A model generated the notes under the pieces. That model was not told the origin of the DNA. It was given only the letters and a program-made list of their open reading frames with translations, and did no database searches. Source: Macrostomum hystrix (Eukaryota; Animalia; Platyhelminthes). From it: 64,000 nucleotides of DNA. Location of the stretch: positions 5,022,001-5,086,000 of the forward strand of contig CATNEN010000001.1 of the NCBI GenBank assembly GCA_950097015.1, written 5' to 3'. The position numbers were made by a program, and so were the translations under genes. Shown in pieces: positions 22,401 to 63,824 of this stretch; position 1 is the first letter of the stretch; every line of letters begins with the position of its first letter.

Positions 22401-23122
22401 TGTTTTCCATATTTCATAATTTTCATTTTTTAAAATACCAATCTACTAAGTTTATGTTTTTAACTGCTTTCATTTTTAGGGTCAATTTGATAAGATCCTG
22501 ATCATCACTTAATATGAGCAAAAAACTTAATTAACTTTATTTAAGATAGTCTAATTGTTTTAAAATTAATGAAATGATATGCAAAAAATAAATAAAATCA
22601 TATTTTGATCTTAAATTATGATCTGGAATTCCAATGCAGTGTTCAAACCTTTTTTTGCATTAAATTAATCTAATTGTGTCTATTTTGTGCTTGTTATAAT
22701 CGGTTAAGTTTTTTTTGCTGCAAAAGTTTTCTTGTCCAAACAAAAATTATTTTTACTTTTTTTATGAGTTAACAATTGTCATTATATTTCATATTTGAAG
22801 TAAAAACATTGACAATAGTTTCATATTTACGTTTTTATCCTGACATGCCTACTTTTAAAGCCGTTTAAGTAGTATTATTAGGTATTGCTTCCTGGGCTAT
22901 ACTTTTTTCAGCACACTTTAGAGTTCTCATTGGCATAGCGAATGGGGTGGGTGATTTACTCGCTAAACTCCTGCCTTTTTGCGTCTATAAAATCCGAGAC
23001 AAACTAGTTGCATATGTTTCAACTCCAGCTTGCCCAATTTTTCGTTTTTCGCTTTGCTCTGCTTTTAATTTGGCAAACATTTTTTCCAGTCTGCCCAACC
23101 GTTTTCGTTCTTAATTGACGAA

Positions 23123-26100
23123 ATGCCAAAGCGCAAGCACGCCTCGCCTACAGTTGATCAGCAGTCAATAAACAGCAACGCTAATAATACTGAAAGTGTC
23201 ACTGAAGGTTCTATAGAAAATCAGCCGTCAGTTCCCACTGTTGTCATGGCAACCACTTCGCCTTGCAATCACGTCAAGCCTGCGCCATTTAGCGACGACG
23301 AAGACGCTATTAATATTTTGAAATCCTGCGACTATTCAGTTAAGATTTCAATCGAGGATGCCAAGGCTGGCTTAGCGACTAGGCCTGTCAGAGTCTACGC
23401 TGACGGAATCTACGATATGTTTCATTCGGGTCACGCTAGGCAGTTGATGCAAGCTAAGATGGCATTTCCCAATGTCCATTTGATTGTTGGCGTCTGCAAT
23501 GACGCTGATACGCATAGGTGAGTCTTAACAATTAGATTTTTTTTCTTTATATTAGTTATTTGGAGCTTGCAGTCTAGTGGTTGTAGCTTTGGACTTTTAA
23601 CGTGTTTGCCTCTCGCGCCAAGGTACCTGAGCTCGATTCCGAGGCGAGGCCGCATTCATTTGGGGGTGCAGCAGCGGAGAGAAGACTTGGGGGCTGGTTG
23701 TTGTGAAAGTTAATATGTACACTGCCTGACGATAAGAAAGTCAAGGCAGATGTACACACCTGTGTGAGCGTGTGCCTGCGAACGGTATCTGTGTACGCGT
23801 GTGCTCAGGAGTCAGCGAAATAGGCAGAATTGCCTCCATTGCCTGCAGCCCTCCTGCAATTATAATAACAAAATATGTGGGCAATGGCACATCATTTGGT
23901 AATAATGGACCCGCAGCCAGCGAGGAGACAATTCTGCCCATTCCTCTGACTCCTGAGCACACACGCACACAGGGGTGTGTACATCTTCCCTGATCGTCAG
24001 GCAGTGAACACTTTCACTTTCACAACACAAAGCCCAAAATCAACGTAGCCTCGATGCGGAATCGATCTCAGGACCCTCGTTGCGAGAGGCAAACGCGTTA
24101 GACCGTTCTGCCACTTCCCTCCAACTATTAATTAATTCACTAACAATATCGCGAGAGCGTGAAAAAAATAAAACGTAGCCCAACTTGAAAAAACCCCCAC
24201 AGAATGAAAGGCAACACTGTCATGCGCGAATCTGAACGCTACGAAGCTGTCCGTCATTGTCGATACGTTGACGAAGTTCTACGCGACGCGCCTTGGTCCT
24301 ACGACTATAGCTTTTTATCTGCTCACAAAATCGACTTTGTGGCTCACGACGACATCCCATACGGAGCCGGCAATACGGAGGATGTCTATAAATGGATTAA
24401 AGATCGCGGCATGTTTCTACCCACTGAGCGCACTGAAGGCATCTCAACAACGGATGTGATTGCTAGAATTATTCTCGACTACGACGTCTATCTGCGTAGG
24501 AATTTAAAGAGAGGATTGTCGCGCAAGGAACTAGGCATCTCCTATATGAAGGAGAAGGAGTTGCAAGTTAAGGTGAGGCTAGTTTGCTTTTGATTTGTAG
24601 ATTTAAGTCATTTTTGGCATATTATTTTAGTCGGAGTTTTAGGTCAGTTTTAGTCAGATTTCCAGTTCAGTTTCTGTCGGAGCTTTAGATCAGTTTTAGT
24701 CAGATTTCTAGTTCAGTTTCTGTCAAAGTTTTAGGTCAGTTTTAGTCGGAGTTTTAGGTCAGTTTTAGTCAGATTTCCAGTTCAGTTTCTGTCGGAGCTT
24801 TAGATCAGTTTTAGTCAGATTTCTAGTTCAGTTTTAGTCAGATTTCTAGTTCAGTTTCTGTCAAAGTTTTAGGTCAGTTTTAGTCAGATTTCTAGTTCAG
24901 TTTTAGTCGGAGTTTTAGGTCAGTTTTAGTCAGATTTCTAGTTCAGTTTTAATCGGAGTTTTAGGTCAGTTTTAGTCAGGTTCTAGTTCAGTTTCTGTCA
25001 GATTTCTAGTTCAGTTTCTGTCAAAGTTTTAGGTCAGTTTTTGACAGAGTTTTAGGTCAGTTTTAGTCAGATTTCTATTTCAGTTTCTGTCGGAGTTTTA
25101 GGTCAGTTTTAGTCGGAGTTTTAGGTTAGTTTTAGTCAGATTTCCAGTTCGGTTTCTGTCGGAGCTTTAGGTCAGTTTTAGTCAGATTTCTAGTTCAGTT
25201 TCTGTCGGAGTTTTAGGTCAGTTTTAGTCGGAGTTTTAGGTTAGTTTTAGTCAGATTTCCAGTTCGGTTTCTGTCGGAGCTTTAGATCAGTTTTAGTCAG
25301 ATTTCTAGTTCAGTTTCTGTCGGAGCTTTAGATCAGTTTTAGTCAGATTTCTAGTTCAGTTTCTGTCGGAGTTTTAGGTCAGTTTTAGTCAGATTTCCAG
25401 TTCGGTTTCTGTCGGAGCTTTAGATCAGTTTTAGTCAGATTTCTAGTTCAGTTTCTGTCGGAGCTTTAGGTCAGTTTTAGTCAGATTTCTAGTTCAGTTT
25501 TAGTCGGAGTTTTAGGTCAGTTTTAGTCAGAGTTCTAGTTCAGTTTCTGTCAGAGTTTTAGGTCAGTTTTAGTCAGATTTCTAGTTCAGTTTTAGTCGGA
25601 GTTTTAGGTCAGTTTTAGTCAGATTTCTAGTTCAGTTTCTGTCGGAGTTTTAGGTCAGTTTTAGTCGGAGTTTTAGGTTAGTTTTAGTCAGATTTCCAGT
25701 TCGGTTTCTGTCGGAGCTTTAGATCAGTTTTAGTCAGATTTCTAGTTCAGTTTCTGTCGGAGTTTTAGGTCAGTTTTAGTCAGATTTCTAGTTCAGTTTT
25801 TGTCAGAGTTTTAGGTCAGTTTTAGTCAGATTTCTAGTTCAGTTTCAATTTATGGCCGTTCGGGTGACTTATTTCTGTCGAGTTTTAGGACCAGTCATGG
25901 ACAAAGTGTTGGTTTTAATTCCGGAGTCAAAGAAATAATTTGTTAAAGAATAGATTAATGACGCCCTAATCACTTATTAGTTAATATTTTATTCACAAAT
26001 AAATAGGAGACTATCATTTCCATGCGCGATCGCATTGGTCGAACTAGACGGGATCTAATTGGCAAATGGGAGCAGCATTCCAATAGATTCGTATCCGGTT

Positions 26101-26606
26101 TCGTGTCTATCTTCGGTCACGACGGCCGAATCAGTCATTGGATGCGCGACAAACGATTGGCCTTCGCTAGGGCTATTAGTCCGGAGTTTGTACAATTGCA
26201 ACAGTCGCCCCTGACAGCTCAGGAGCAGCAGCAGCAGCAGGATTATCAAGAACAGCGTCAGCGTCGACAATCTCAGGATGCATTGTCGTCTTCCTCGGCA
26301 TCTTCGCCGGTTGCTAAGCGCCCGAGATCGTTGCTAAGCGGCTCGATTACGGGAGCATTCTCTGATGAAGACGACGACGAAGAGGCGGAAGATTGGGACA
26401 CACTATTTCCTAAGCTGCGAGACGCTGCGATTCAACAGCATCAGCATCAGCAGCAGGTGCAGCAGCAGCAGCAGCAGTTGCAGCTGTCGACTTCATCATC
26501 TCCACCGACTCGTCTGGCTCACACTAGTGCTTGCTCCTCGTCGACGTCAGCTAAAAATAACGGGGGCGGTAATGCCAAAACTAGCAGCACCTCATTGTCT
26601 GGCTGA
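23123..26606 (+). CDS. PCYT1: Choline-phosphate cytidylyltransferase (CCT). Exons 23123..23517, 24203..24572, 26007..26606
   Basis: Motifs [26 protein letters not shown] (HxGH), [25 protein letters not shown] and RTEGISTTD. Junctions are phase-consistent GT-AG. Confidence 0.95.
23571..23860 (+). mobile_element. tRNA-derived SINE-like repeat, copy 2 (PCYT1 intron 1)
   Basis: cctctcgcgccaaggtacctgagctcgattcc head followed by the same family core. Confidence 0.7.
23878..24120 (-). mobile_element. tRNA-derived SINE-like repeat, copy 3, inverted relative to copy 2
   Basis: Reverse complement reads gtggcagaacggtctaacgcgtttgcctctcgcaacgagggtcctgagatcgattcc, then the core. Confidence 0.7.
24620..25845. 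repeat. Minisatellite, 23-bp units (CAGTTTTAGTCAGATTTCTAGTT and variant), PCYT1 intron 2
   Basis: Direct inspection. Confidence 0.93.
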
Positions 26607-27699
26607 TGCGATCGGAACTTAATTTAGATTTTCGAATGACTTATCTTAATTAGAATTCCAATCAAAACTTCTTAAATATAAGATTATTTATATTCTGCCT
26701 AATTTTGATTACCATTTTCTGTTATATTTTTGCTTGTTAAATCTGTGTCAGTCTGGTCAGAAGGAAAGTGCACACAGGTTTTTATTTGTCCCCAGTTACT
26801 TAAATTCTTTTCAAATTTTTGGTTGTATGAGTTTATAGCTCTGTGCTTAAAACAGTGATGTGCACCTAGATTTTTTAATTCTGTATCAAATATTGTTGTC
26901 ATGCAATAGAAAACTAGTTTGCTTTTTGTGTCATTGAAAATGATAAGAATGTTTTAATTGAAATATGATTGACAATTATTTTCACAGAACACATTCACAT
27001 CAAACTTCCAATTTGATTTAACGACACTTGTCAATCAACCAGATAACTGAATTCGCTAGTCTTTGTAATTGTCTTTGTTCTAAAAGAAACACGATTGATT
27101 TTTTTGCTGAATATGGGATAGGATTTTACCATAGAAATTTCCCTTTTTTACTCTTTCTTAAACTGCGTCTTTTAATGATATAATTTGCTTCCTAAATCGA
27201 TTATTGTATTATTGTTTATCTTTAGATTCCTGTATTGCGTTATATTCGGCTTGGCAATTAGTGTCTTTGTTTATTTATGTTTGACTTTTTTAAAGTAGAA
27301 AGGTATAAATTTCTAATTTTATTTTGCACGTACATTTATATTTATGCCGAAAACTTACCTACCTATGCTCTGTATTGTTGAGCTGTGACAAAAACACTGT
27401 TCTATTTTCAATTTTTTGTGCATTAAAAAGTCAAACTTAAAAGTCAAGGATACTGTACTTAAACCATTGTTTTAAGAAAACTGTTTTTTTCTGTTAAAAA
27501 ATCTTGCTTTAAGCTATTTTGCGTTCTAAAAGTCAATATTCATTTAACAACTCCTGCTAATGAGGCGAGACAAAAGACAGAATCAAGTCGTCATCCTGAC
27601 CAAGTATTTTTTATTTCAGTTCGAATGTAAAGTATTCTCTTTTCATTTTGTTTTTTTAGTAAAATATTCTATCGAGATTTTTATAGATAATAGATTTCA

Positions 27700-29245
27700 C
27701 GGGTGAGATTTTATTAGATTTTAGTTTAGAGGGGTGAGATTTTAATAGATTTTAGTTTAGAAGGGTGAGATTTTAAAAGATGGTAGTTTAGAATGGTGAG
27801 ATTTTAATAGATGACAGTTTAGAAGGGTGAGATTTTAAAAGATGGTAGTTTAGAATGGTGAGATTTTATTAGATGACAGTTTAAAGGGGTGAGATTTTAA
27901 TAGATGACAGTTTAGAAGGGTGAGATTTTGATAGATGACAGTTTAGAAGGGTGAGATTTAAATAGATGGTAGTTTAGAAGGGTGAGATATTAATAGATTT
28001 TAGTTTAGAAGGGTGAGATTTAAATAGATGGTAGTTTAAAAGGGTGAGATTTAAATAGATGGTAGTTTAGAAGGGTGAGATTTTAATAGATTTTAGTTTA
28101 GAAGGGTGAGATTTTAATATATGGTAGTTTAAAAGGGTGAGATTTTAATAGATAACAGTTTAAAAGGGTGAGATTTTAATAGATGGTAGTTTAGAAGAAT
28201 GAGATTTTAAAAGATGGTAGTTTAGAAGGGTGAGATTTTAAAATATGGTAGTTTAAAAGGGTGAGATTTTAATAGATGGTAGTTTAGAAGGGTGAGATTT
28301 TAATTGATGGTAGTTTAGAAGGGTGAGATTTTAACATATTTTAGTTTAGAATGGTGAGATTTTAATAGATGGTAGTTTAGAAGGGTGATATTTTAATGGA
28401 TGACAGTTTAGAAGGGTGATATTTTAATGGATGACAGTTTAGAAGGATGAGATTTTAATAGATGACAGTTTAGAAGGGTGAGATTTTAAAAGATGGTAGT
28501 TTAGAATGGTGAGATTTTAATAGATGACAGTTTAGAAGGGTGAGATTTTAATAGATGACAGTTTAGAAGGGTGAGATTTTGATAGATGACAGTTTAGAAG
28601 GGTGAGATTTAAATAGATGGTAGTTTAGAAGGGTGAGATATTAATAGATTTTAGTTTAGAAGGGTGAGATTTAAATAGATGGTAGTTTAAAAGGGTGAGA
28701 TTTAAATAGATGGTAGTTTAGAAGGGTGAGATTTTAATAGATTTTAGTTTAGAAGGGTGAGATTTTAATATATGGTAGTTTAAAAGGGTGAGATTTTAAT
28801 AGATAACAGTTTAAAAGGGTGAGATTTTAATAGATGGCAGTTTAGAAGAATGAGATTTTAAAAGATGGTAGTTTAGAAGGGTGAGATTTTAAAATATGGT
28901 AGTTTAAAAGGGTGAGATTTTAATAGATGGTAGTTTAGAAGGGTGAGATTTTAATTGATGGTAGTTTAGAAGGGTGAGATTTTAACATATTTTAGTTTAG
29001 AATGGTGAGATTTTAATAGATGGTAGTTTAGAAGGGTGATATTTTAATGGATGACAGTTTAGAAGGGTGATATTTTAATGGATGACAGTTTAGAAGGATG
29101 AGATTTTAATAGATGACAGTTTAGAAGGGTGAGATTTTAAAAGATGGTAGTTTAGAATGGTGAGATTTTAATAGATGACAGTTTAGAAGGGTGAGATTTT
29201 AATAGATGACAGTTTAGAAGGTTGGGATTTTAATAGATTGGGTTT
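27700..29245. repeat. Minisatellite, 31-bp unit TAGTTTAGAAGGGTGAGATTTTAATAGATGG
   Basis: Direct inspection; 651-bp internal duplication. Confidence 0.95.
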
Positions 29246-29460
29246 AGATTCTGTGATAGAGTGCCATTAACATAGGTGAGATTTTGTTATGTTGTGCCAT
29301 TAGATTCTATGCATTTCTTTACAATGAGCAAAAGAAAGTTGGTGTTTGTAAACTGCAGAAACTATGACTGATATAGTGAATAACCACACTTCGGATTTTG
29401 TTTTTGCAGTGTTATAGCAGCCTGGTTCAACCAATCAAAATCGTTCTAGAAGAAAACACA

Positions 29461-30780
29461 ATGTCCTGCGGCGGCGATAATGGCGGCGGTTGCTGCGATG
29501 GTCACGATCACATTGACGCCAGCGCTGATCAATCGACGCGCTACTGTCTGCACCAGATGATTGACACGGAGAATTTGCAGTGCCTAAATGAAGCTACGCC
29601 AGGCTCTGGCAAATCAGTGTTTAGACCATGGTCGCAGCGATTAGAAATCGATGCTTTTGTTGAATCCGATTGCGACGAAGAGCTACTGTTTAATGTGCCA
29701 TTCACTGGCGTTGTCCGAGTTAAAGGCATCGTTCTGATTGGCGGCGAAGGGGACACGAGACCAACTAAAATTAGATTATTTCGCAATAGGGAATATATGA
29801 CCTTCGATCAGGCTGGTGCTGATGCCGACCAAGAAATTGATATGTGCCCGGATCCTCATGGACTCATTGAGTATAGTCTCAAGCCGACTAAGTTTGGCTC
29901 GGTAAGTTGCTTATTAAAATGCTTTATTTAACTTTTATTTTGTTTTTAAAAAATATATTTCAACGTTGTATTTTTGATTTGGTTCATTTCCTGATCGATT
30001 TGGGTCATGTCATTATCGATTTGGGTCATGTCATTATCGATTTGGGTCATGTCATTATCGATTTGGGTCATGTCATTATCGATTTGGGTCATGTCATTAT
30101 CGATTTGGGTCATGTCATTATCGATTTGGGTCATGTCATTATCGATTTGGGTCATGTCATTATCGATTTGGGTCATGTCATTATCGATTTGGGTCATGTC
30201 ATTATCGATTTGGGTCATGTCATTATCAATTTAGGTCATGTCATTATCAATTTGAGTCATGTCATTATTGCTGTGGGTCATGTCATTATCAATTTGAGTC
30301 ATGTCATTATCGATTTGGGTCATGTCATTATTGCTGTGGGTCATGTCATTATCGAGTTTTTTTTCCTAGTCGATTTAGGTCACTTCCTGATTGATTTGGG
30401 TCATTTATTTTCCATTTGGGTCATTTCCTGATTGATGTGGGTCATTTCCTGATTGATGTGGGTCATTTGTATTCCATTATAGTCATTTCCAATCTGTTTA
30501 AAATATTTCATTATCGTTAGATCTTATTGTTGACCACTGTAATCTACGTTAATTAACCTTTAATTGTTCGCAGGTCAGCCACCTGTCTATTCACGTATCA
30601 GCCAACGCTGGCGGTGACACCAGCCGGGTTCATTACATTGGCCTTCGCGGCGATTTCTTAGAAGCGTTTCGTTCCAGAGTTGTTGTAGCCAATTATGAGA
30701 TTCGACCGCAGGCTGCCGATCATTCGGTTGGTTCGGACACTTTGGAATCCGGATTAAATCAGGCTGCGGCTTCTAAGTAG
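29461..30780 (+). CDS. PITHD1: PITH domain-containing protein 1. Exons 29461..29901, 30574..30780
   Basis: LQCLNE..VESDCDEELLFNVPFTG in exon 1. Exon 2 (absent from the ORF track) reads VSHLSIHVSANAGGDTSRVHYIGLRGDF..VVANYE..ADH. Confidence 0.9.
29990..30480. repeat. Minisatellite, 21-bp unit ATCGATTTGGGTCATGTCATT, PITHD1 intron
   Basis: Direct inspection. Confidence 0.95.
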
Positions 30781-30929
30781 ACTCAACAGAATGCCGTTAT
30801 TGGTCCGCGATTTTTTTATTTAGTTACATTTTTGTACATTGACAAAGACAATGAAATACTAATACAAAGAGTTGCACGTTTGAGAGTGAGTTGAAAGAAG
30901 TGAGTTAGTAATAATAGTAATAATCGCAG

Positions 30930-31120
30930 TAGTGGTAGGAGGCAATTCTGCCCATTTCGCTGACTCCTGAGCACACACGAACACAGATACTTTAACTGTG
31001 TGCAGGTGTGTACATCTGCCCTGACTTTCTCATCGTCAGGCAGTGTACACTCTCACTGTGCCTTGGAGGTTGGCCCTCAAGGGCGTAAATTGCACGACAA
31101 GCCACCAAGCCTTCTCTCCA
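30930..31120 (-). mobile_element. SINE-like repeat, copy 4 (tRNA head missing)
   Basis: Core aattctgcccatttcgctgactcctgagcac..ctttctcatcgtcaggcagtgtacac is shared with the other copies. Confidence 0.65.
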
Positions 31121-32124
31121 AATGAATGGGTCTGGGTCTCTCAAAGATCTCAGCCCGCTGGGTTCCCCGCCTCCTCACACCTCACATCATTTCCATAGAT
31201 TTTTGAGCTTGTGTAACACTACCCCTGACCTTCGCGCACGTTTCTTGCTGCAGCTCCTGAATAGAAAAAATATATGAACATGATTTTAACTTTGTTTTCT
31301 TTGTGACAAAATTTCCTTTCATTTGACACCATGGGCATGAAATTTCATGGCTCCGTTGAAGAGCTACCTTGGACATTCCGGGAACTTTTGGGACACCCCT
31401 CGTAACTAAGGCGCATTATGATCGTGTATAGTTGACCTAGAATGCATGAAGTAATCTTTCGGTCATTGCTAGCCTCAGTCATGTAATCTTAACCAGTTGG
31501 ATCTTCGCTGACATTGTGACTTACATTAATAGCTGTTATTAAAACTAAACTTTGGACAGTTTCAAATCCACTTTCGCTATTCTGAACCTTGTGCACTGAC
31601 CAATGTAGGGGCATTACCAAAAATTCTACGTTAAATGCACATTGAAAGAATGCAGTCAAATTAGTTTTTTTTTCTACCGGTTCATTGCTAGTTAATACTA
31701 GTATTTCATTTTCTGCATACTCCAGGTCCAAGGCTAAAATTTTATCTAGGTTTCATTAAACTTTGCTCTCTAGCTTCTGTTATTTAGAAATAGTTGTTCG
31801 GTAATTTAAGGGCGCCGCTTATCTGCCGTTTGAGAAGTCACGAGAAGAAACTGTTTTAAAGACTACATATTTTTAATAACTAACTTTTTTCAGTTACTAA
31901 ACTAACTAAGTTTTGATTGTTAGAAAAATTATTCACATAAACTTTATGATTAAATATTTGTTCGCATTTATCTTTAATCTAAAATGTAGGCTTTTGATGT
32001 CATAATTTGATGTATTTGCATATTGTAAAACTTGTTGTTGTTTATAGTGTAATTATTTAAAGTAAATAGTAAAACTATATTAAAAGTTAAGAATGAAACA
32101 GGTTATGGATTAGGACATATTGGT

Positions 32125-33780
32125 GAGATGAGACACGGGAGAGGTGAGACAGGGGAGAGATGAGACATGGGAGAGATGAGACAGGGGAGAGATGAGACAC
32201 GGGAGAGATGAGACACGGGAGAGATGAGACACGGGAGAGATGAGACACGGGAGAGATGAGACACGGGGGAGATGAGACACGGGAGAGATGAGACACGGGA
32301 GAGTTGAGACACGGGAGAGATGAGACACGGGAGAGATGAGACACGGGGGAGATGAGACACGGGAGAGATAAGACACGGGAGAGATTAGACAAGGGAGAGA
32401 TGAGACACGGGAGAGATGAGACACGGAAGAGATGAGACACGGGAGAGATGAGACACGGGAGAGATGAGACACGGGAGAGATGAGACATGGGAGAGATGAG
32501 ACACGGAAGAGATAAGACAGGGGAGAGGTGAGACGGGAGAGATTAGACAGGGGATAGATGAGACACGGGAGAGATGAGACACGGGAGAGATGAGACACGG
32601 GAGAGATTAGACAGGGTGAGAGATGAGACAGGGGAGAGGTGAGACAGGGGAGAGATGAGACACAGGAGAGATGAGGCATGGGAGAGATGAGACACGGGAG
32701 AGATGAGACACGGGAGAGATGAGACACGGGAGAGGTGAGACACGGGAGAGATGAGACACGGGAGAGATGAGACATGGGAGAGATGAGACACGGGAGAGAT
32801 GAGACACGGGAGAGATAAGACACGGAAGAGATGAGACAGGGGAGAGGTGAGACATGGGAGAGATGAGACAGGGGAGAGATGAGACACGGGAGAGATGAGA
32901 CACGGGAGAGATGAGACACGGGAGAGATAAGACACGGAAGAGATGAGACAGGGGAGAGATGAGACATGGGAGAGATGAGACAGGGGAGAGATGAGACACG
33001 GGAGAGATGAGACACGGGAGAGATGAGACACGGGAGAGATGAGACACGGGAGAGATGAGACACGGGGGAGATGAGACACGGGAGAGATGAGACACGGGAG
33101 AGTTGAGACACGGGAGAGATGAGACACGGGAGAGATGAGACACGGGGGAGATGGGACACGGGAGAGATAAGACACGGGAGAGATTAGACAAGGGAGAGAT
33201 GAGACACGGGAGAGATGAGACACGGAAGAGATGAGACACGGGAGAGATGAGACACGGGAGAGATGAGACACGGGAGAGATGAGACATGGGAGAGATGAGA
33301 CACGGAAGAGATAAGACAGGGGAGAGGTGAGACGGGAGAGATTAGACAGGGGATAGATGAGACACGGGAGAGATGAGACACGGGAGAGATGAGACACGGG
33401 AGAGATTAGACAGGGTGAGAGATGAGACAGGGGAGAGGTGAGACAGGGGAGAGATGAGACACAGGAGAGATGAGGCATGGGAGAGATGAGACACGGGAGA
33501 GATGAGACACGGGAGAGATGAGACACGGGAGAGGTGAGACACGGGAGAGATGAGACACGGGAGAGATGAGACATGGGAGAGATGAGACACGGGAGAGATG
33601 AGACACGGGAGAGATAAGACACGGAAGAGATGAGACAGGGGAGAGGTGAGACACGGGAGAGATGAGACACGGGAGAGATGAGACATGGGAGAGATGAGAC
33701 ACGGAAGAGATGAGACAGGGGAGAGATTAGACAGGGGATAGATGAGACACGGGAGAGATGAGACACGGGAGAGTTTAGAC
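32125..33780. repeat. Minisatellite, 16-bp unit GGGAGAGATGAGACAC (reverse complement of the 9.4-11.4 kb array)
   Basis: Direct inspection; 799-bp internal duplication. Confidence 0.97.
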
Positions 33781-33870
33781 AGCGAGAGACAAGACGGAGA
33801 AGAGTTAAGGCATAATAAACAATTAGTGGTTCAAGTTTTATATAACCAACAATTTACTTTACAGCAAACA

Positions 33871-51979: not shown

Positions 51980-52399
51980 TGGACTGATGGATTATCGTTG
52001 TTGTTGTTGTGTTGTAACTTACCTCTTTGTGTAACTTGCTAGACATGATGTCTAACCGTAATATTTTTCGTTCAAACTATGAATTACAAGCCAGAGCAAT
52101 AAAGAACCTAATGTATATACCGGTTTCTAGGAAATTCCAAATGGGATTTCCCTGAAAAACTCACCTGCTAGGGCAATCCTACATCCTTTATTGTTCTTTA
52201 ACATGAAATTGCTCCTCATCAGTATCTAAAAGGTGGGATTTTTCCCATATAAAAATCGACACCTAATCAGTGTCTATCAACAGAGATTTCCCCATTGTTA
52301 ATCGACTCATAATCAGTACCTAACAGGTGAGATTTCCCTATTAAAAATCGACTCTCTACCTGTGCCTACCTGTGCCTAACATCTGGGATTTCCCTAAAA

Positions 52400-54932
52400 A
52401 ATCGACTCCTAATACGTAACTAGCGTCTGTGATTTCCCTAACAAGAATAGACTCCTAATCAGTGTCTATTGTCTGGGATTTCCCTAACAAGAATAGACTC
52501 CTAATCAGTGTCTATCGTCTGGGATTTCCCTAACAAGAATAGACTCCTAATCAGTGTCTATCGTCTGGGATTTCCCTAACAAGAATAGACTCCTAATCAG
52601 TGTCTATTGTCTGGGATTTCCTTAACAAGAATAGACTCCTAATCAGTGTCCATTGTCTGGGATTTCCCTAACAAGAATAGACTCCTAATAAGTGTCTATT
52701 GTCTGGGATTTCCATAACAAGAATAGACTCCTAATCAGTGTCTATTGTCTGGGATTTCCCTAACAAGAATAGACTCCTAATATATATATATATATAGACG
52801 CAAAAAGTTAGATAGCTTTTGCGCGCACGCGCTCGCAGAACAGACTCCTAATCAGTGTCTATTGTCTGGGATTTCCCTAACAAGAATAGACTCCTAATCA
52901 GTGTCTATTGTCTGGGATTTCCTTAACAAGAATAGACTCCTAATCAGTGTCTATTGTCTAGGATTTCCCTAACAAGAATAGACTCCTAATCAGTGTCTAT
53001 CTTTTAGGATTTTCCTAACACGAATAGACTCCTAATCAGCGTCTAACGTCTGGGATTTCCCTAAGAAAAATAGACTCCGAATCAGTGTCTATTGTTTGGG
53101 ATTTCCCTAACAAGAATAGACTCCTAATCAGTGTCTATTGTCTGGGATTTCCCTAACAAAAATAGACTCCGAATCAGTGTCTATAGTCTGGGATTTCCCT
53201 AACAAGAATAGACTCCTAATCAGTGTCCATTGTCTGGGATTTCCCTAACAAGAATAGACTCCTAATCAGTGTCTATTGTCTGGGATTTCCCTAACAAGAA
53301 TAGACTCCTTATCAGTGTCTATTGTCTGGGATTTCCCTAACAAGAATAGACTCCTTATCAGTGTCTATTGTCTGGGATTTTCCTAACACGAATAGACTCC
53401 TAATCAGCGTCTAACGTCTGGGATTTCCCTAACAAAAATAGACTCCGAATCAGTGTCTATTGTCTGGGATTTCCCTAACAAGAATAGACTCCTAATCAGT
53501 GTCTATTGTCTGGGATTTCCCTAACAAAAATAGACTCCGAATCAGTGTCTATAGTCTGGGATTTCCCTAACAAGAATAGACTCCTAATCAGTGTCCATTG
53601 TCTGGGATTTCCCTAACAAGAATAGACTCCTAATCAGTGTCTATAGTCTGGGATTTCCCTAACAAGAATAGACTCCTAATCAGTGTCTATTGTCTGGGAT
53701 TTCCTTAACAAGAATAGACTCCTAATCAGTGTCCATTGTCTGGGATTTCCCTAACAAGAATAGAATCCTAATCAGTGTCTATTGTCTGGGATTTCCCTAA
53801 CAAGAATAGACTCCTTATCAGTGTCTATTGTCTGGGATTTTCCTAACACGAATAGACTCCTAATCAGCGTCTAACGTCTGGGATTTCCCTAACAAAAATA
53901 GACTCCGAATCAGTGTCTATTGTCTGGGATTTCCCTAACAAGAATAGACTCCTAATCAGTGTCTATTGTCTGGGATTTCCCTAACAAGAATAGACTCCTA
54001 ATCAGTGTCTATTGTCTGGGATTTCCCTAACAAGAATAGAATCCTAATCAGTGTCCATTGTCTGGGATTTCCCTAACAAGAATAGACTCCAAATCAGTGT
54101 CTAACGTCTGGGATTTCCCTAACAAGAATATACTCCTAATCAGTGTCTATTGTCTGGGATTTCTCTAACAATAATAGAATCCTAATCAGTGTCTAACGTC
54201 TGGGATTTCCCTAACAAGAATATACTCCTAATCAGTGTCCATTGTCTGGGATTTCCCTAACAAGAATATACTCCTAATCAGTGTCCATTGTCTGGGATTT
54301 CACTAACAAGTATAGACTCCTAATCAGTGTCTATTGTCTGGGATTTCCCTAACTAGAATAGACTCCTAATCAGCGTCTAACGTCTGGGATTTCCCTAACA
54401 AGAATAGACTCCTAATCAGTGTCTAACGTCTGGGATTTCCCTAACAAGAATATACTCCTAATCAGTGTCTATCGTCTGGGATTTCTCTAACAATAATAGA
54501 ATCCTAATCAGCGTCTAACGTCTGGGATTTTCCTAACAAGAATAGACTCCTAATCAGTGTCTAACGTCTGGGATTTCCCTAACAAGAATATACTCCTAAT
54601 CAGTGTCCATTGTCTGGGATTTCCCTAACAAGGATAGACTCATAATCAGTGTCTATTGTCTGGGATTTCCATAACAAGGATAGACTCATAATCAGTGTCT
54701 ATTGTCTGGGATTTCCCTAACAAGGATAGACTCATAATCAGTGTCTATTGTCTGGGATTTCCCTAACAAGGATAGACTCCTAATCAGTGTCCATTGTCTG
54801 GGATTTCCCTAACAAGGATAGACTCATAATCAGTGTCTATTGTCTGGGATTTCCCTAACAAGGATAGACTCATAATCAGTGTCTATTGTCTGGGATTTCC
54901 CTAACAAGAATAGAATCCTAATCAGTGTCTAT
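52400..54932. repeat. Minisatellite, 46-bp unit AACAAGAATAGACTCCTAATCAGTGTCTATTGTCTGGGATTTCCCT
   Basis: Direct inspection. Confidence 0.97.
52782..52841 (-). mobile_element. ~60-bp insertion with (TA)n tail and 11-bp target-site duplication
   Basis: Interrupts a 46-bp array; AGACTCCTAAT occurs at both 52771-52781 and 52842-52852. Confidence 0.65.
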
Positions 54933-55206
54933 AAGTGTTGAATTTACCTAATAAAAATTTATACTAATCAATGTTTGATTTCCTTGTACTTTAGTTTTAA
55001 TTCTCGCTACTAAAGTACGTAAATAAACTTGTTGTACTGTAATAACGGACGTCGTTAATATAATTTTTAAATAAAATATATTGTCACGACTGTAAAAATA
55101 GAAATTGATGACCAATTCTTACAACTCGTGCTTAAAAATAATTTTTATATTAGATTTTTATTTTAAAAGTGTTATAGTTTATCAATATAAATCTAATTTA
55201 TTGAAT

Positions 55207-55220
55207 CGTAACTGTTTCAG
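55207..55220 (+). promoter_or_regulatory. Putative trans-splice acceptor of NUB1 (cgtaactgtttcag)
   Basis: TTTCAG preceded by a branch-like TAAC; the NUB1 frame starts in phase 0; in-frame TAA at 55209-55211. Confidence 0.75.
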
Positions 55221-58200
55221 GATGAACACGAGTTGCTTGTCAAACTGCGTCAAGCATTACGCAGTAGATCTATTAAACTGTGGGAGCCGCCATATACTTT
55301 TAAAACCAATGACGGTCTGGGCGAAGCGGACTCTACTGGGATGAGTTCATTAACGACTAGTTTGTCCAATGAATTGCGCCTATGTCCAGCGGCCTGCGCT
55401 AAGGCTTTGGAAAATTTGCGTAGGCAAGCTTTGGATAATGCCGAATCACTGGCTCATTATCGAGCTACACAGGAGGCTACTATGAAAGTGCGTCTACCTC
55501 GGGGTCACGAGCCTCAGGTGCTTAGAATCCGGTGCAGCCTACAGTCAACAGGTTATCAATTCAAATCGTTGATTGTAGCTCAGGCTGGTCAACAACTGTC
55601 TATGGCCGGCGTTACCCTAATCTGCAATGGTCGAGTGTTGGACGACGCATTGTCGCTTGGTTAGTCTTGTCTAAAATTCGAACTCTCGACCTTTTTGTTG
55701 TGTAGTTCAAAGCAAACTACAATTTTCATTAAGGTTTGAAGTTAGAATCCAAAGTACTACTAATGAGCAGTAAAATTATGCCTAAATTTGTTAAGGGGTT
55801 AGCGTGTTGGCCTCTCGAACCATTGTAACTGAGCTCGATTCCGCGGCGAGGCCACATTCATATAGGGGCGCTGCCACGGCGAGAAGGCTTAGGGTTGTCG
55901 TAAAATTTGAGGTCCAACCTCCAAGGCACAGTGAGAGTGTACACTGCCTGACAATGAGAAAGTCTGTGTACGGTATCTGTGTGCGTGTGTGCTCAGGAGT
56001 CAGTGAAATGGGCAGAATTGCCTCCTCGCTGTCTGCAAGTCTATTGTCACCAAATGATGTGCCATTGCCCGCAGCCCTCCTGCAATGATTATATATTATT
56101 ACTATGCCTCTAATGGTGGTGTTATAGTAAAATATTTACTATATATCCCAATCCCTATGTTAGGCAACCAAGGCTTTCAGAATGCTAGCAGCGTTATGGT
56201 TTTAATACGCGCCGCTCCGGACGATGTTGAAAATCTGCGCACCTCCGCCGACGACGCCGACGCTCTACGCGAAGCCGAATCCGAAGCCGTACTATTGGCC
56301 GGCGAAGATGACCCAGAATCCGGACCGGGCGGCGGCATTGGCGTCGGGACCGGCATGCTAGATGTGACTAATCAGAGAGGAGAACGATTGCAGCTGCCCA
56401 AGGAGCATAGGAAGGCTCTGTACTATGCGATGATTCTCGGAGAGAAGGTTTGTTATGTGCAATGGTGTCAAAAGTTAATTTCTAGATTGAGAGTTTCTAG
56501 ATTGAGAGTTTCTAGATTGATAGTGGAAAGGTAGAGTTGATTGGGAGATGTGAAGTAAATAGTGAGAGGTATAGTAGATTCGGATAGGAAGAGTAGATAG
56601 GGAGAGGTAGAGTAGATAGGGAGAGGTAGAGTAGATAGAGAGGTAGAGTAGATAGGGAGAGGTAGAGTAGATCGGGAGAGGTAGAGTAGATAGGGAGAGG
56701 TAGAGTAGATAGGGAGAGGTAGAGTAGATCGGGAGAGGTAGAGTAGATAGGGAGAGGTAGAGTAGATAGGGAGAGGTAGAGTAGATAGTCAGAGGTAGAG
56801 TAGATCGGGAAGGTGCAGGGGTAGAGTGGAAGGTGCAGGGGTAGAGTAGAAGGTGCAGGGGTAGAGTAGAAGGTGTAGTGGTAGAGTAGAAGGTGCAGGG
56901 GTAGAGTGGAAGGTGCAGGGGTAGAGTGGAAGGTGCAGGGGTAGAGTGGAAGGTGCAGGGGTAGAGTAGAAGGTGCAGGGGTAGAGTAGAAGGTGTAGTG
57001 GTAGAGTAGAAGGTGCAGGGGTAGAGTGGAAGGTGCAGGGGTAGAGTGGAAGGTGCAGGGGTAGAGTGGAAGGTGCAGGGGTAGAGTGGAAGGTGCAGGG
57101 GTAGAGTGGAAGGTGCAGGGGTAGAGTGGAAGGTGCAGGGGTAGAGTGGAAGGTGCAGGGGTAGAGTGGAAGGTGTCTTACTTGACTTGGCTTGCAGACT
57201 GGCCCAACTCGTGTCCCAATTAACTTCAGGGCAAGGCCGCCCTTCGCTCCGGTGAGCACGGTCGCGCACTACTCCTGCTGCTATCAGCCGACGAAGCATT
57301 TCAACGCGTTGATCGCAGTCTATTAGACAAGGTCGATAATCACGCTCTACTGCAGCTAGACACCGTCTGGTGCTATCTGTGCCTGAGTCGGCTTGACGAA
57401 CTAGCCGACGCTTGGGATCGACTCGGCAAGGCCGAGCGGGCCCTGGCTAAGGCCTACGGAGAGCGACTGGAACGAGTTGAAGCTGTTAAAGGTGAGATTG
57501 CGTTGATCATTATTTAAAATACTCTTCTCTACATAAGATCTACTTCTCTCCGCTAAAAAAACCGCTCCCTCCCTTTAAAATCCGCTCCGTCCATTTAAAA
57601 TCCGCTTCCTCCATTTAGAATCCGCTCCATTCATTCAGATTCCACTCCCTCCATTCAGGATCCGCTCCCTACATTCAGTATCCGCTCCTTCCATTTAGAA
57701 TCCGCTCCATTCATTCAGATTCCACTCCCTCCATTCAGGATCCGCTCCCTACATTCAGTATCCGCTCCTTCCATTTAAAATCCGCTCCCTACATCTAGAC
57801 TCTATTATCTACATCTAGACTCTATTATCTTCATCTAGAATCCGCTCCCTTTATCAAGAATCCGCTCCCTTCATCTAGAATCCGCTCCCTTCATCTAGAA
57901 CCAGCTCCCTTCATCTAGAATCCGCTCCCTTCATCTAGAATCCGCTCCCTTCATCTAGAACCAGCTCCCTTCATCTAGAACTGGCTCCCTTCATCTAGAA
58001 CCAGCTCCCTTCATCTAGAATCCGCTCCCTTCATCTAGAACCCGCTCCCTTCATCTAGAACCAGCTCCCTTCATCTAGAACCAGCTCCCTTCATCTAGAA
58101 TCCGCTCCCTTCATCTAGAATCCGCTCCCTTCATCTAGAACCAGCTCCCTTCATCTAGAATACGCTCCCTTCATCTAGAATCCGCTCCCTTCATCTAGAA

Positions 58201-61200
58201 CCAGCTCCCTTCATCTAGAATTCGCTCCCTTCATCTAGAACCAGCTCCCTTCATCTAGAACCAGCTCCCTTCATCTAGAACCCGCTCCCTTCATCTAGAA
58301 CCAGCTCCCTTCATCTAGAACCAGCTCCCTTCATCTAGAATCCGCTCCCTTCATCTAGAATACGCTCCCTTCATCTAGAATCCGCTCCCTTCATCTAGAA
58401 TCCGCTCCCTTCATCTAGAACCAGCTCCCTTCATCTAAAATCCGCTCCCTTCATCTAGAATCCGCTCCCTTCATCTAGAACCAGCTCCCTTCATCTAGAA
58501 CCAGCTCCCTTCATCTAGAATCCGCTCCCTTCATCTAGAACCAGCTCCCTTCATCTAAAATCCGCTCCCTTCATCTAGAATACGCTCCCTCCATCTAGAA
58601 TCCGCTCCCTTCATCCCTTACAGGCACCTCAGCCGGCGGCGAAAGAATCCATCTACTGAGGCTGCACCTACTAAAAGCAATGTGCTGCTTCTATAGCAAT
58701 CGATTGGACGAGGCCACGAATGAGGCCAACTTAGCCTCTGGCGAACTGGATAGATTAGCCATAGACGATGCCGGACTGAGCAGACTAATGGAGATGGGAT
58801 TCACCGTGTTGGAATCTCGCCTAGCGTTGCGTCATTGCGCCAACAATGCCGAAATGGCCACGGAATGGATTGTAGCCCGCAGGGAGCGACAACGAAATCA
58901 AGCCATTGAGAGGCGTCTGGCGCGACGTTTGGGCTATCTGGACGATGGCAAAACGGCCGTATCGGCTAGCGATTGTCGTCGGTTAATTGAAATGGGCTAC
59001 TTAGAGAGCCACTCGCATGAGGCTCTGGTGCTGACTAGAAATAATCTAGAAGCTGCACTGACCCTGCTGCAGGAAGATCAGGATAGATTGCAGGTGATTT
59101 TAGTCGGAAATATGTCTTTCTTTGTAGGTCAAGTTAGCGACGGGTTTAATCATAAAAAATGAAAATAGACCGGGTGTTTAAATAGGTTTACAGCCATTAG
59201 ATTCTCCGTTCAATAACCACTACTCAATAACAGTATTTGACCAGCCTAAACTCGAGCTGATAGAGGATTAGTAACTTAGATTGGATTAGGATCTAAGAGA
59301 GGATTAGTAACTGAGATGGTATTAATAACAGAGAAGATTAGTACCTTATAGATTAGAGTATTAGTAAGGACTGAAGGCATGAGGAACTGAAATGAACTGA
59401 TTAGGTACTAGAGTAAGGTGTTACTGATACGAGATTAGTAGCTGAGGGAGGATTAGTAACTAATATGGCATTGGATAGGAGAGGATTAGGAGCTGGGAGG
59501 GGATTAGTAACTAATATGGCATTGGATAGGAGAGGATTAGGAGCTGGGAGGGGATTAGTAGCTAATATGGCATTGGATAGCAGAGGATTAGGAGCTGGGA
59601 GGGATTAGTAACTAATATGGCATTGGATAGCAGAGGATTAGGAGCTGGGAGGGATTAGTAACTAATATGGCATTGGATAGGAGAGGATTAGGAGCTGGGA
59701 GGATTAGTAACTAATATGGCATTGGATAGCAGAGGATTATGAGCTGGGAGGGGATTAGTAGCTAATATGGCATTGGATAGCAGAGGATTAGGAGCTGGGA
59801 GGGGATTAGTAGCTAATATGGCATTGGATAGCAGAGGATTAGGAGCTGGGAGGGGATTAGTAACTAATATGGCATTGGATAGGAGAGGATTAGGAGCTGG
59901 GAGGGGATTAGTAGCTAATATGGCATTGGATAGCAGAGGATTAGGAGCTGGGAGGGATTAGTAACTAATATGGCATTGGATAGCAGAGGATTAGGAGCTG
60001 GGAGGGGATTAGTAGCTAATATGGCATTGGATAGCAGAGGATTAGGAGCTGGGAGGGGATTAGTAACTAATATGGCATTGGATAGCAGAGGATTAGGAGC
60101 TGGGAGGGGATTAGTAGCTAATATGGCATTGGATAGCAGAGGATTAGGAGCTGGGAGGGGATTAGTAGCTAATATAATATGGCATTGGATAGGAGAGGAT
60201 TAGGAGCTGGGAGGGGATTAGTAACTAATATGGCATTGGATAGCAGAGGATTAGGAGCTGGGAGGGGATTAGTAACTAATATGGCATTGGATAGGAGAGG
60301 ATTAGGAGCTGGGAGGGGATTAGTAACTAATATGGCATTGGATTGCAGAGGATTAGGAGCTGGGAGGGGATTAGTAACTAATATGGCATTGGATAGCAGA
60401 GGATTAGGAGCTGGGAGGGGATTAGTAACTAATATGGCATTGGATAGCAGAGGATTAGGAGCTGGGAGGGGATTAGTAACTAATATGGCATTGGATTGCA
60501 GAGGATTAGGAGCTGGGAGGGGATTAGTAACTAATATGGCATTGGATAGCAGAGGATTAGGAGCTGGGAGGGGATTAGTAACTAATATGGCATTGGATAG
60601 CAGAGGATTAGGAGCTGGGAGGGGATTAGTAACTAATATGGCATTGGATAGCAGAGGATTAGTAGCTGGGAAGGGATTAGTAACTAATATGGCATTGGAT
60701 AGCAGAGGATTAGGAGCTGGGAGGGGATTAGTAACTAATATGGCATTGGATAGGAGAGGATTAGGAGCTGGGAGGGGATTAGTAGCTAATATGGCATTGG
60801 ATAGCAGAGGATTAGGAGCTGGGAGGGGATTAGTAGCTAATATGGCATTGGATAGCAGAGGATTAGGAGCTGGGAGGGGATTAGTAACTAATATGGCATT
60901 GGATAGCAGAGGATTAGGAGCTGGGAGGGGATTAGTAACTAATATGACATTGGATAGCAGAGGATTAGGAGCTGGGAGGGGATTAGTAACTAATATGGCA
61001 TTGGATAGCAGAGGATTAGGAGCTGGGAGGGGATTAGTAACTAATATGACATTGGATAGGAGAGGATTAGGAGCTGGGAGGGGATTAGTAACTAATATGG
61101 CATTGGATAGCAGAGGATTAGGAGCTGGGAGGGGATTAGTAACTAATATGGCATTGGATAGCAGAGGATTAGGAGCTGGGAGGGATTAGTAACTAATATG

Positions 61201-63824
61201 GCATTGGATAGCAGAGGATTAGGAGCTGGGAGGGGATTAGTAACTAATATGGCATTGGATAGGAGAGGATTAGGAGCTGGGAGGGGATTAGTAACTAATA
61301 TGGCATTGGATAGCAGAGGATTAGGAGCTGGGAGGGGATTAGTAACTAATATGGCATTGGATAGGAGAGGATTAGGAGCTGGGAGGGGATTAGTAACTAA
61401 TATGGCATTGGATAGCAGAGGATTAGGAGCTGGGAGGGGATTAGTAGCTAATATAATATGGCATTGGATAGGAGAGGATTAGGAGCTGGGAGGGGATTAC
61501 TAACTAATTTGGCATTGGATAGCAGAGGATTAGGAGCTGGGAGGGATTAGTAACTAATATGGCATTGGATAGCAGAGGATTAGGAGCTGGGAGGGGATTA
61601 GTAGCTAATATAATATGGCATTGGATAGGAGAGGATTAGGAGCTGGGAGGGGATTAGTAACTAATATGGCATTGGATAGCAGAGGATTAGGAGCTGGGAG
61701 GGATTAGTAACTAATATGGCATTGGATAGGAGAGGATTAGGAGCTGGGAGGGATTAGTAACTAATATGGCATTGGATAGGAGAGGATTAGGAGCTGGGAG
61801 GGGATTAGTAGCTAATATGGCATTGGATAGGAGAGGATTAGGAGCTGGGAGGGGATTAGTAGCTAATATAATATGGCATTGGATAGGAGAGGATTAAGAG
61901 CTGGGAGGGGATTAGTAACTAATATGGCATTGGATAGCAGAGGATTAGGAGCTGGGAGGGATTAGTAACTAATATGGCATTGGATAGCAGAGGATTAGGA
62001 GCTGGGAGGGATTAGTAACTAATATGGCATTGGATAGGAGAGGATTAGGAGCTGGGAGGGGATTAGTAGCTAATATGGCATTGGATAGCAGAGGATTAGG
62101 AGCTGGGAGGGGATTAGTAGCTAATATAATATGGCATTGGATAGGAGAGGATTAGGAGCTGGGAGGGGATTAGTAACTAATATGGCATTGGATAGCAGAG
62201 GATTAGGAGCTGGGAGGGATTAGTAACTAATATGGCATTGGATAGCAGAGGATTAGGAGCTGGGAGGGATTAGTAACTAATATGGCATTGGATAGGAGAG
62301 GATTAGGAGCTGGGAGGGGATTAGTAGCTAATATGGCATTGGATAGGAGAGGATTAGGAGCTGGGAGGGGATTAGTAGCTAATATAATATGGCATTGGAT
62401 AGGAGAGGATTAGGAGCTGGGAGGGGATTAGTAACTAATATGGCATTGGATAGCAGAGGATTAGGAGCTGGGAGGGATTAGTACCTAATATGGCATTGGA
62501 TAGCAGAGGATTAGGAGCTGGGAGGGATTAGTAACTAATATGGCATTGGATAGGAGAGGATTAGGAGCTGGGAGGGGATTAGTAGCTAATATGGCATTGG
62601 ATAGCAGAGGATTAGGAGCTGGGAGGGGATTAGTAGCTAATATGGCATTGGATAGCAGAGGATTAGGAGCTGGGAGGGGATTAGTAGCTAATATGGCATT
62701 GGATAGCAGAGGATTAGGAGCTGGGAGGGGATTAGTAGCTAATATGGCATTGGATAGCAGAGGATTAGGAGCTGGGAGGGGATTAGTAACTAATATGGCA
62801 TTGGATAGCAGAGGATTAGGAGCTGGGAGGGGATTAGTAACTAATATGGCATTGGATAGGAGAGGATTAGGAGCTGGGAGGGGATTAGTAGCTAATATGG
62901 CATTGGATAGCAGAGGATTAGGAGCTGGGAGGGGATTAGTAACTAATATGGCATTGGATAGCAGAGGATTAGGAGCTGGGAGGGGATTAGTAGCTAATAT
63001 GGCATTGGATAGCAGAGGATTAGGAGCTGGGAGGGGATTAGTAGCTAATATGGCATTGGATAGCAGAGGATTAGGAGCTGGGAGGGGATTAGTAGCTAAT
63101 ATGGCATTGGATAGGAGAGGATTAGGAGCTGGGAGGGGATTAGTAACTAATATGGCATTGGATAGGAGAGGATTAGGAGCTGGGAGGGGATTAGTAGCTA
63201 ATATGGCATTGGATAGCAGAGGATTAGGAGCTGCTAGGGCCTAAGGGGTTTCTTAACAGTAAAAATAGACTCTTCTTACTCTTCTATCCCATTTCTCCCC
63301 AATCCATTTTACTCGTCTAGACTTTAGCCGATCGTCGGTACAATGCCAGACTGCAACTGGTTCTGGACACAGCCTCAGCTGCGGGCATCGCTGCAGCTGA
63401 TATAGAACGATTCTCTAGCAAACTGGTCCGCTTAGTCGGTGCTAGATTAGAAGCAATCAGTCGTCAAGAAACCGCCTCCTCTAGGAGAAAGGCACAGCAG
63501 ATTCTAATCGGTTGCGTTGACGATTTGCTAGACGATCAGTCGAATGTTGACGTCGCCGGCAGTTCCGGCGCTGCATCGTCCGATGCCGCGTCGCCTGCCG
63601 CCTCTTGGACTACGGAATCCGAAGGCGAAGCCGATCCTTCGTCCGCCGCCCGCAATATCGGGGTTGTTGCCGATCTGCGCGCCAATTCTCAGCGTCAACG
63701 TAGGGCGTTGGAAAAACTACGCGACGAAGTTGGCGATCAGGATGAAGAGTCGTATTTGGATTCGGATCTGCAGGAGGAGCGACGGCAGTTGGACAGGCTG
63801 TGGGCCATGCTGGGTGCTAAATAG
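55221..63824 (+). CDS. NUB1: NEDD8 ultimate buster 1 (UBL + UBA domains); no ATG before the conserved N-terminus. Exons 55221..55659, 56164..56447, 57230..57491, 58624..59093, 63321..63824
   Basis: KLRQALRSRSIKLWEPPYT, UBL (LICNGRVL), TNQRGERLQLP..KALYYAMILGEKG, DNHALLQLDTVWCY, and two UBA motifs (LMEMGF, LIEMGY). All four introns are GT-AG and phase-consistent. Confidence 0.9.
55795..56100 (+). mobile_element. SINE-like repeat, copy 7 (NUB1 intron 1)
   Basis: Head cctctcgaacc..gagctcgattccgcggcgagg, core, 3' end gcagccctcctgcaat and an AT-rich tail. Confidence 0.7.
56560..57176. repeat. Compound purine-rich minisatellite (19-bp GTAGAGTAGATAGGGAGAG, then 20-bp GTAGAGTGGAAGGTGCAGGG), NUB1 intron 2
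   Basis: Direct inspection. Confidence 0.93.
57560..58616. repeat. Minisatellite, 20-bp unit TCCGCTCCCTTCATCTAGAA, NUB1 intron 3
   Basis: Direct inspection. Confidence 0.95.
59440..63235. repeat. Minisatellite, ~51-bp unit AATATGGCATTGGATAGCAGAGGATTAGGAGCTGGGAGGGGATTAGTAACT, NUB1 intron 4
   Basis: Direct inspection; source of the MALDSRGLGAGRGLVTN artefact ORFs. Confidence 0.97.

Follow-up and report, generated by a model that had tools for sequence, protein, structure and literature searches.

Long runs of genes on one strand, with strand switches as boundaries and SL (spliced-leader) trans-splicing as the means of resolution, make up the transcription units of kinetoplastids, and the operons of Caenorhabditis elegans often include genes for ribosomal proteins and RNA processing. 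The locus studied here is a run of + strand genes in the flatworm Macrostomum hystrix, located in a stretch of 64,000 nt (GenBank assembly GCA_950097015.1, contig CATNEN010000001.1, positions 5,022,001 to 5,086,000 of the forward strand), which is called the window and whose coordinates are used below. The run contains, in order, PCYT1, PITHD1, GEMIN8, DCPS, RPL37A, RPL36A, an SR-type RRM gene (SR-RRM), PEX12, MED10 and NUB1. Our analysis made it somewhat probable that these are SL-trans-spliced housekeeping genes, that at least the block from DCPS to PEX12 is co-transcribed, and that the whole run consists of a few units. The layout resembles that of kinetoplastid units, but there nearly all genes lie in units of tens to hundreds without individual promoters, whereas about 20% of M. 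hystrix genes are SL-spliced and the run comprises eleven genes when a further one beyond NUB1 is counted. C. elegans operons are similar in their co-directional housekeeping genes, and their downstream mRNAs are released through SL trans-splicing that is coupled to 3' end formation, which would also apply here; they differ in the dedicated SL2 of downstream genes, in intercistronic regions of ~100 nt and in an operon size of no more than eight genes (cited in PMC8629364). Since Macrostomum has a single SL type, SL identity is no marker of operon membership in this genus.

The closest described systems are the SL operons of Macrostomum lignano (PMC5730564, PMC8629364); a looser likeness extends to those of C. 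elegans, tunicates and parasitic flatworms. The SL of that species has 35 nt and ends in AUG, and the acceptor motif YTNCAG is enriched at its SL sites (PMC8629364). Genes were assigned to an operon there when they lay on the same strand, the downstream gene was SL-spliced and the repeat-adjusted distance was <1 kb; the spacers had a mode near 100 bp, and the largest operon contained nine genes (PMC8629364). The M. hystrix locus agrees with these operons in its identical 35-nt SL ending in AUG, the same YTNCAG motif, the conserved housekeeping members, the repeat-inflated spacers, most of which shrink below ~1 kb after subtraction, and an orthologous DCPS...PEX12 block that is annotated as one transcriptional unit in M. 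lignano. It differs in that the run, if it were one unit, would contain ten or eleven genes against the nine-gene maximum, and in adjusted spacers of mostly 0.3-1.2 kb against the ~100-bp mode. In the operon candidates of parasitic flatworms, too, the genes share one strand and the downstream gene has an SL acceptor; chimeric models were regarded in that work as signs of polycistronic precursors, distances reached several kb, and the largest candidate contained nine genes (PMC12582326). Their SL sequences differ, however, and a 300-bp cut-off was applied to them, whereas all nine M. hystrix spacers exceed 300 bp as long as their repeats are included. The M. hystrix genome paper reported 34,543 genes, 20% of them SL trans-spliced at a 10x threshold; the term “operon” does not occur in it, and operons were not analysed there (PMC10468722).

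A search of the M. hystrix genome revealed at least 23 copies of the exact 35-nt M. lignano SL, mostly in tandem arrays with a spacing of ~11.6 kb. In the one SL gene copy that was read, the SL was followed by GTAAGA (a GTAAG donor), an AU-rich Sm-like site and a hairpin. These arrays, the SL-bearing contigs described below and the published share of SL-spliced genes (PMC10468722) show that this flatworm uses SL trans-splicing, as an SL trans-spliced animal operon, the kind proposed in the preliminary description, would require. To locate SL junctions, RNA-derived Logan contigs from four runs of two studies were aligned over 41100-43500. The leader ...TGCGAAGACTCAATTTATTGCAT was joined at 41349/41350, the predicted RPL36A acceptor, in all four runs, and at 42220/42221, the predicted SR-RRM acceptor, in two runs (X5 and X6). 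The SR-RRM contig was cis-spliced from exon 1 to ...AATAGCCTAC (44034 onward; exon 2 from 44032), which showed that the runs are RNA. The SL is added at the predicted RPL36A and SR-RRM acceptors, so that the proposed mapping of SL reads to the predicted AGs gave a positive result at both acceptors within the aligned stretch. The RPL36A contigs ended at 41820/41821, which is read as the mRNA 3' end; the distance from there to the SR-RRM acceptor was 399 nt, the only such distance measured.

All ten acceptor distances proposed beforehand were reproduced exactly, with 33, 51, 6, 39, 61, 20, 4, 0, 8 and 0 nt between acceptor and coding sequence (CDS) in gene order. A YTNCAG acceptor without an ATG between it and the start codon was present at nine of the ten genes, compared with 11% of 309 background ATGs (other ATGs outside repeats within 22-64 kb; binomial P ~3e-8 for nine of ten). 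The sole misfit to YTNCAG, the ATTCAG of RPL36A, is nevertheless a verified SL site. A k-mer search of the 300 nt upstream of the ten acceptors found no common motif that could represent a promoter or intercistronic element.

That the SL can donate the start codon is known from flatworms, and two genes of the run appeared to need such a codon. The PEX12 frame was open from 49159/49160 (ADDVTPSS...) with no in-frame genomic ATG for ~265 codons, and the conserved N-terminal part of the protein lies within this ATG-less segment. The NUB1-like frame was open from 55221 (DEHELLVKLRQ...), and the sole nearby genomic ATG was out of frame. The terminal AUG of the SL was in phase with both coding sequences. 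As PEX12 has no usable genomic ATG, its start codon must come from the terminal AUG of the SL. In M. lignano the PEX12 proteins are annotated as “partial”, and one of them begins at the homologous ADDAIANQ... without Met. Taken from the reading frames, this is indirect but good evidence for the putative SL sites of PEX12 and NUB1. The AUG of the SL was also in frame with the start codons of PCYT1, PITHD1 and GEMIN8 with no intervening stop, where it would add 11, 17 and 2 residues, respectively, which brings the genes open to the SL AUG to five of ten. In RPL36A, SR-RRM and MED10, it starts an out-of-frame open reading frame (ORF) that overlaps the true start.

The orthologous block of M. lignano was identified by an exon-by-exon protein search, and NCBI names and accessions were used. 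On the scaffold of 189,079 bp, DCPS (PAA70550.1, BOX15_Mlig029688g1), PEX12 (PAA70554.1, Mlig029688g5) and MED10 (PAA70555.1, Mlig020247g1) were found, and on the scaffold of 641,168 bp DCPS (PAA84283.1, Mlig009200g1), PEX12 (PAA84287.1, Mlig029688g8) and MED10 (PAA84288.1, Mlig020247g4). The consecutive accessions on these two scaffolds gave DCPS, exactly three proteins, PEX12 and MED10. The third scaffold (1,385,214 bp), with DCPS as PAA94162.1 (Mlig029688g6), MED10 as PAA94158.1 (Mlig020247g2) and PEX12 not identified, showed this order, too, but contained one protein less. The comparison of gene order in a related flatworm, which had been suggested as a check, thus showed the DCPS-PEX12-MED10 order to be kept on three M. 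lignano scaffolds. The three proteins between DCPS and PEX12 are presumably RPL37A, RPL36A and SR-RRM, judging from their number and position. The identity between the two species was 57% for PEX12, 62% for DCPS (BOX15_Mlig029688g1) and ~90% for MED10 (BOX15_Mlig020247g1/g2/g4); with PEX12 and DCPS at only 57% and 62%, the conserved gene order spans considerable divergence. Additionally, the M. lignano UniRef model A0A1I8JR10 was found to be a chimera of SR-RRM, PEX12 and MED10. Its RS domain matched window positions 45647-46273, including SRKRKRSRSRDRHRD and GKRRHRHRSRD, and was followed by matches to PEX12 (61% over 49679-50161) and MED10 (91% over 51722-51859), which confirmed the order RRM > PEX12 > MED10 in M. 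lignano. Look-ups of the exact M. hystrix RPL37A, RPL36A, MED10 and GEMIN8 proteins among protein clusters found none of them, and a literature search for “Mlig029688” found no mention.

The names of the M. lignano genes carry information on transcription. A transcriptional unit in this nomenclature is an assembled RNA-seq transcript, units that are >=95% identical receive one prefix, and the g numbers denote the genes cut from a unit at SL and poly(A) signals (PMC5730564). DCPS g1 and PEX12 g5, which share one prefix and one scaffold, therefore point to one assembled five-gene precursor in M. lignano. Reading the gN suffix as a copy number was also considered and was dropped, because DCPS g1 and PEX12 g5 occur with one prefix on one scaffold (PMC5730564). 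The best-supported unit is thus likely to be DCPS > RPL37A > RPL36A > SR-RRM > PEX12, on the strength of the M. lignano annotation. MED10 stands under another prefix on all three scaffolds, which speaks against one ten-gene unit; together with the position of DCPS as gene 1 of its own unit, this favours a division of the run into several units over a single operon of ten genes. Separate units, or promoters of their own, are probable for MED10 (possibly with NUB1) and for PCYT1/PITHD1/GEMIN8.

The spacers were measured from the stop codon to the next acceptor with the 3' untranslated region (UTR) included, and the repeats subtracted were TRF tandem arrays and one family resembling short interspersed elements (SINE-like; the copies at 30936-31119 and 35648-35849). 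The nine spacers, all within 26607..55220, ranged from 533 to 3241 nt before and from 278 to 1238 nt after subtraction, and their unique DNA had 26-36% GC; the previous estimate had been mostly ~0.3-1.7 kb of AT-rich DNA. Seven of the nine were <1 kb after adjustment, with the 3' UTR counted, and the other two were 1088 and 1238 nt, so that, applied to these distances, the M. lignano rule of <1 kb would chain most or all of the run into one operon. That repeats inflate spacers and may mislead distance-based operon callers, a point raised in the preliminary description, had already been handled in 2021 by repeat subtraction and the <1 kb threshold (PMC8629364). Canonical AATAAA or ATTAAA signals were missing after most stops of the ten genes, and the 3' ends were therefore not predictable. 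A minisatellite array was present in eight of the nine spacers; the arrays were strong, except for a weak 42-44-nt repeat in the RPL36A-SR-RRM spacer. The GEMIN8-DCPS spacer contained only a SINE-like copy.

The assignment of the genes was upheld by Pfam matches (Table 1), which confirmed ten genes lying head-to-tail on the + strand. No minus-strand gene was found between them: five non-repeat minus-strand ORFs had no significant Pfam match, and the minus-strand ORFs within the run were translated minisatellites or the antisense of coding exons. Searches of the run for tRNAs and Rfam families also found none. The SR-RRM product has a long RS domain. The tenth gene is presumably NUB1, a call based partly on a probable likeness of its first exon (IKLWEPPYTF) to human NUB1. 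The proposed count of ten genes held for the cluster itself, but its end did not, as an eleventh + strand gene follows NUB1; it has a weak MIF4G match, is UPF2-like and has exons from ~66.6 to 89 kb in window coordinates. The run thus comprises eleven same-strand genes, and minus-strand ORFs resume only at ~91 kb (window coordinates). On the other side, 5' of PCYT1, ORFs with domain-like sequence lie on the minus strand, one of them with a weak LDL-receptor class A match. By our own estimate, ~8-17 chance runs of this length are expected among 34,543 randomly oriented genes, and the same-strand run by itself is therefore not significant.

In the proposed mechanism, RNA polymerase II would transcribe several adjoining genes as one precursor, the downstream mRNAs would be freed by 3' cleavage and polyadenylation of the preceding gene, and the 35-nt SL would be trans-spliced onto the YTNCAG acceptor just 5' of each downstream CDS, also giving a start codon to PEX12 and NUB1. 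We infer co-transcription in M. hystrix, as well as SL use at the acceptors other than those of RPL36A and SR-RRM. As a polycistronic precursor from one promoter is the defining feature of an operon, the M. hystrix locus is regarded as a candidate operon.

Several observations weigh against this explanation. SL junctions were tested at only two of the ten acceptors. The adjusted spacers of 0.3-1.2 kb are nearer to the 1-kb cut-off than to the ~100-bp M. lignano mode, and a perfect CCAAT box lies 63 nt 5' of the SR-RRM acceptor, with further CCAAT boxes upstream of PCYT1 and NUB1. The M. lignano units differ among the three copies, with DCPS named Mlig009200g1 on one of the scaffolds, and RNA-seq assemblers can merge neighbouring genes through read-through; the differently broken units fit a splitting of units at repeat-rich spacers (PMC8629364). 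In the four runs, no contig covered 41829-42152 in the RPL36A-SR-RRM spacer, which counts only weakly, since contigs lose rare RNAs and the uncovered segment neither shows nor excludes a precursor. The contig depth was ~425-700 at RPL36A and 63-80 at SR-RRM, a difference of about 7-9-fold in what is a poor measure of expression, and these depths are not decisive between operon and own promoters. The 65-nt contigs on the RPL37A-RPL36A minisatellite had a depth of 61-69 over ~28 copies; with only 2-3 per copy, they are ambiguous between outron RNA and trace DNA.

It is possible, but rather unlikely, that there is no operon and that each gene has its own promoter in the AT-rich spacer, the SL only trimming a short outron and giving an AUG where needed; the same-strand run would then be due to chance and conserved microsynteny. 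Most SL-spliced M. lignano genes are indeed monocistronic, with ~60% of them outside operons (PMC8629364). As the adjusted spacers are in the upper allowed range, compact promoters could still fit, and 0.28-1.24 kb of unique DNA would be enough for one. The CCAAT boxes at SR-RRM, PCYT1 and NUB1, the single examined spacer (RPL36A-SR-RRM) spanned by no contig, and the number of eleven-gene runs expected by chance point in the same direction. Such independent transcription fits less well, however, with the presence of DCPS and PEX12 in one RNA-seq transcriptional unit of M. lignano, with the conservation of the six-gene order despite the divergence of PEX12 and DCPS, and with the M. lignano gene model that fuses three of the genes. 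In addition, several of the adjusted spacers fall below 400 nt even with the 3' UTR counted.

A single precursor of 41-67 kb for all ten genes (eleven with the UPF2-like gene), transcribed from one promoter in the 2.5-kb divergent region 5' of PCYT1, would agree with the SL-type acceptors at all ten genes, with spacers that are all near or <1 kb by the M. lignano heuristic once the 3' UTR is allowed for, and with the minus-strand genes that bound the run on both sides; the split M. lignano units are compatible with it as well, since repeat-rich spacers are known break points of such units (PMC8629364). It is nevertheless improbable, because DCPS is the first gene of its M. lignano unit and MED10 is assigned to a different unit on each of the three scaffolds, the two spacers that remain largest after adjustment (1.24 and 1.09 kb) are found among the upstream genes, and the largest gene numbers published are nine, for M. 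lignano operons and Schistosoma japonicum candidates (PMC8629364, PMC12582326), and eight, for C. elegans (PMC8629364). If true, it would be longer than any flatworm operon recorded so far, the published maxima being nine genes; its minisatellite-laden spacers would be removed by SL trans-splicing, and kilobase tandem repeats would be tolerated in intercistronic regions. The proposal of one or a few polycistronic units is thus partly supported: the DCPS-PEX12 block, one unit in M. lignano, is a likely core operon, and a single ten-gene transcript is less likely.

Table 1. Genes of the M. hystrix run with their Pfam matches and spacers, and SINE-like copies, in window coordinates.
Feature	Position	Strand	Acceptor and start	Exons	Pfam match (ORF; E value)	Spacer to next gene, raw (nt)	Spacer, repeat-adjusted (nt)
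1 PCYT1 (choline-phosphate cytidylyltransferase)	23090..26606	+	putative SL acceptor AG 23088-23089, TTCCAG (fits YTNCAG); ATG 23123	~23090-23517, 24203-24572, 26007-26606 (splice sites from sequence)	CTP_transf_like (two ORFs, 23123-23521 and 24204-24593)	2803	1238
2 PITHD1	29410..30780	+	putative SL acceptor end 29409; ATG 29461	exon 2, 30574-30780	PITH (29398-29931; 2.4e-38)	3084	1088
3 GEMIN8	33865..34995	+	putative acceptor AG 33863-33864; ATG 33871	single exon	GEMIN8 (33742-34995; 2.6e-16)	948	746
4 DCPS (scavenger decapping enzyme)	35944..37802	+	putative acceptor end 35943; ATG 35983	exon 2 from 37550	DcpS (35983-36852) and DcpS_C (37557-37802), on the two exons	1797	374
5 RPL37A	39600..39939	+	putative acceptor end 39599; ATG 39661	single exon	Ribosomal_L37ae (39661-39939; 1.6e-39)	1410	278
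6 RPL36A (L44e)	41350..41821	+	SL junction 41349/41350	CDS 41370-41687	Ribosomal_L44 (41370-41687; 7.6e-34)	533	355
7 SR-RRM (SR-related RRM protein, SREK1/SRSF11-like)	42221..46429	+	SL junction 42220/42221; ATG 42225	exon 1 ends 42830, exon 2 from 44032, RS-domain exon to stop 46429	RRM_1 (42225-42893)	2730	784
8 PEX12	49160..50206	+	acceptor AG 49158-49159; CDS from 49160		Pex2_Pex12 (49376-50206; 2e-17)	1309	771
9 MED10	51516..51979	+	putative acceptor end 51515; ATG 51524	single exon	Med10 (51524-51979; 4.9e-32)	3241	608
10 NUB1-like	55221..63824	+	acceptor end 55220	~55221-55659, 56181-56447, 58624-59127, 63321-63824	two UBA domains (58680-59162)		
SINE-like copies	18617-18787, 23597-23837, 30936-31119, 35648-35849, 45081-45420, 55794-56062						

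Tandem repeats were abundant throughout the locus. The arrays over 24625-63233 were distinct minisatellites with periods of 16-51 nt and lengths of up to 3.8 kb, and they also occurred in many introns: a 21-mer minisatellite lies inside the PITHD1 intron, and the introns of the NUB1-like gene are full of minisatellites. Within the GEMIN8 CDS, an in-frame 21-nt repeat of 11.5 copies (34296-34536) encodes (GYGEVGQ)n. The 35-mer array at 40141-41272 in the RPL37A-RPL36A spacer was found at this locus only, genome-wide. A genome-wide search gave thousands of candidate matches to the satellite family that includes the 16-mer GAGATGAGACACGGGA array at ~31978-33789, which recurs at 9.4-11.5 kb in the window. 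The SINE-like element, identified by self-BLAST, is ~200-340 nt long with 72-88% identity among copies, which lie in either orientation within the cluster's introns and spacers. The UPF2-like gene has a TTTTCAG acceptor 60 nt 5' of its ATG (L009 2604-2666, equivalent to window positions 66604-66666), and, unlike the ten genes, it carries a 5-codon upstream ORF (ATGTTTGATGGCATTTGA) between acceptor and ATG.

A second RPL37A > RPL36A linkage was found in M. hystrix on the minus strand at C7:4575001-4583005 (L014). Its RPL37A copy (7664-8005) encodes an identical protein and its RPL36A copy (1-267) is 90% identical, with a WW-domain gene between the two on the same strand and P450-like and xanthine-dehydrogenase-like ORFs further downstream (L013). 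The mRNA of this paralogous RPL36A is also SL-bearing; the RNA contigs showed the leader followed by CCGCCAGCAAA and ATG.

SL operons, their housekeeping bias and repeat-inflated spacers have already been published for Macrostomum (M. lignano, 2021, PMC8629364), and this general picture is unchanged. What M. hystrix gains is a concrete operon candidate that has in part been verified by RNA and that shares a conserved core with M. lignano despite considerable protein divergence. The locus could be used to test in what way kilobase minisatellites are tolerated within the spacers of flatworm operons, how a single SL type serves first and downstream genes alike, and how frequent SL-supplied start codons are, as two genes of the run need one.

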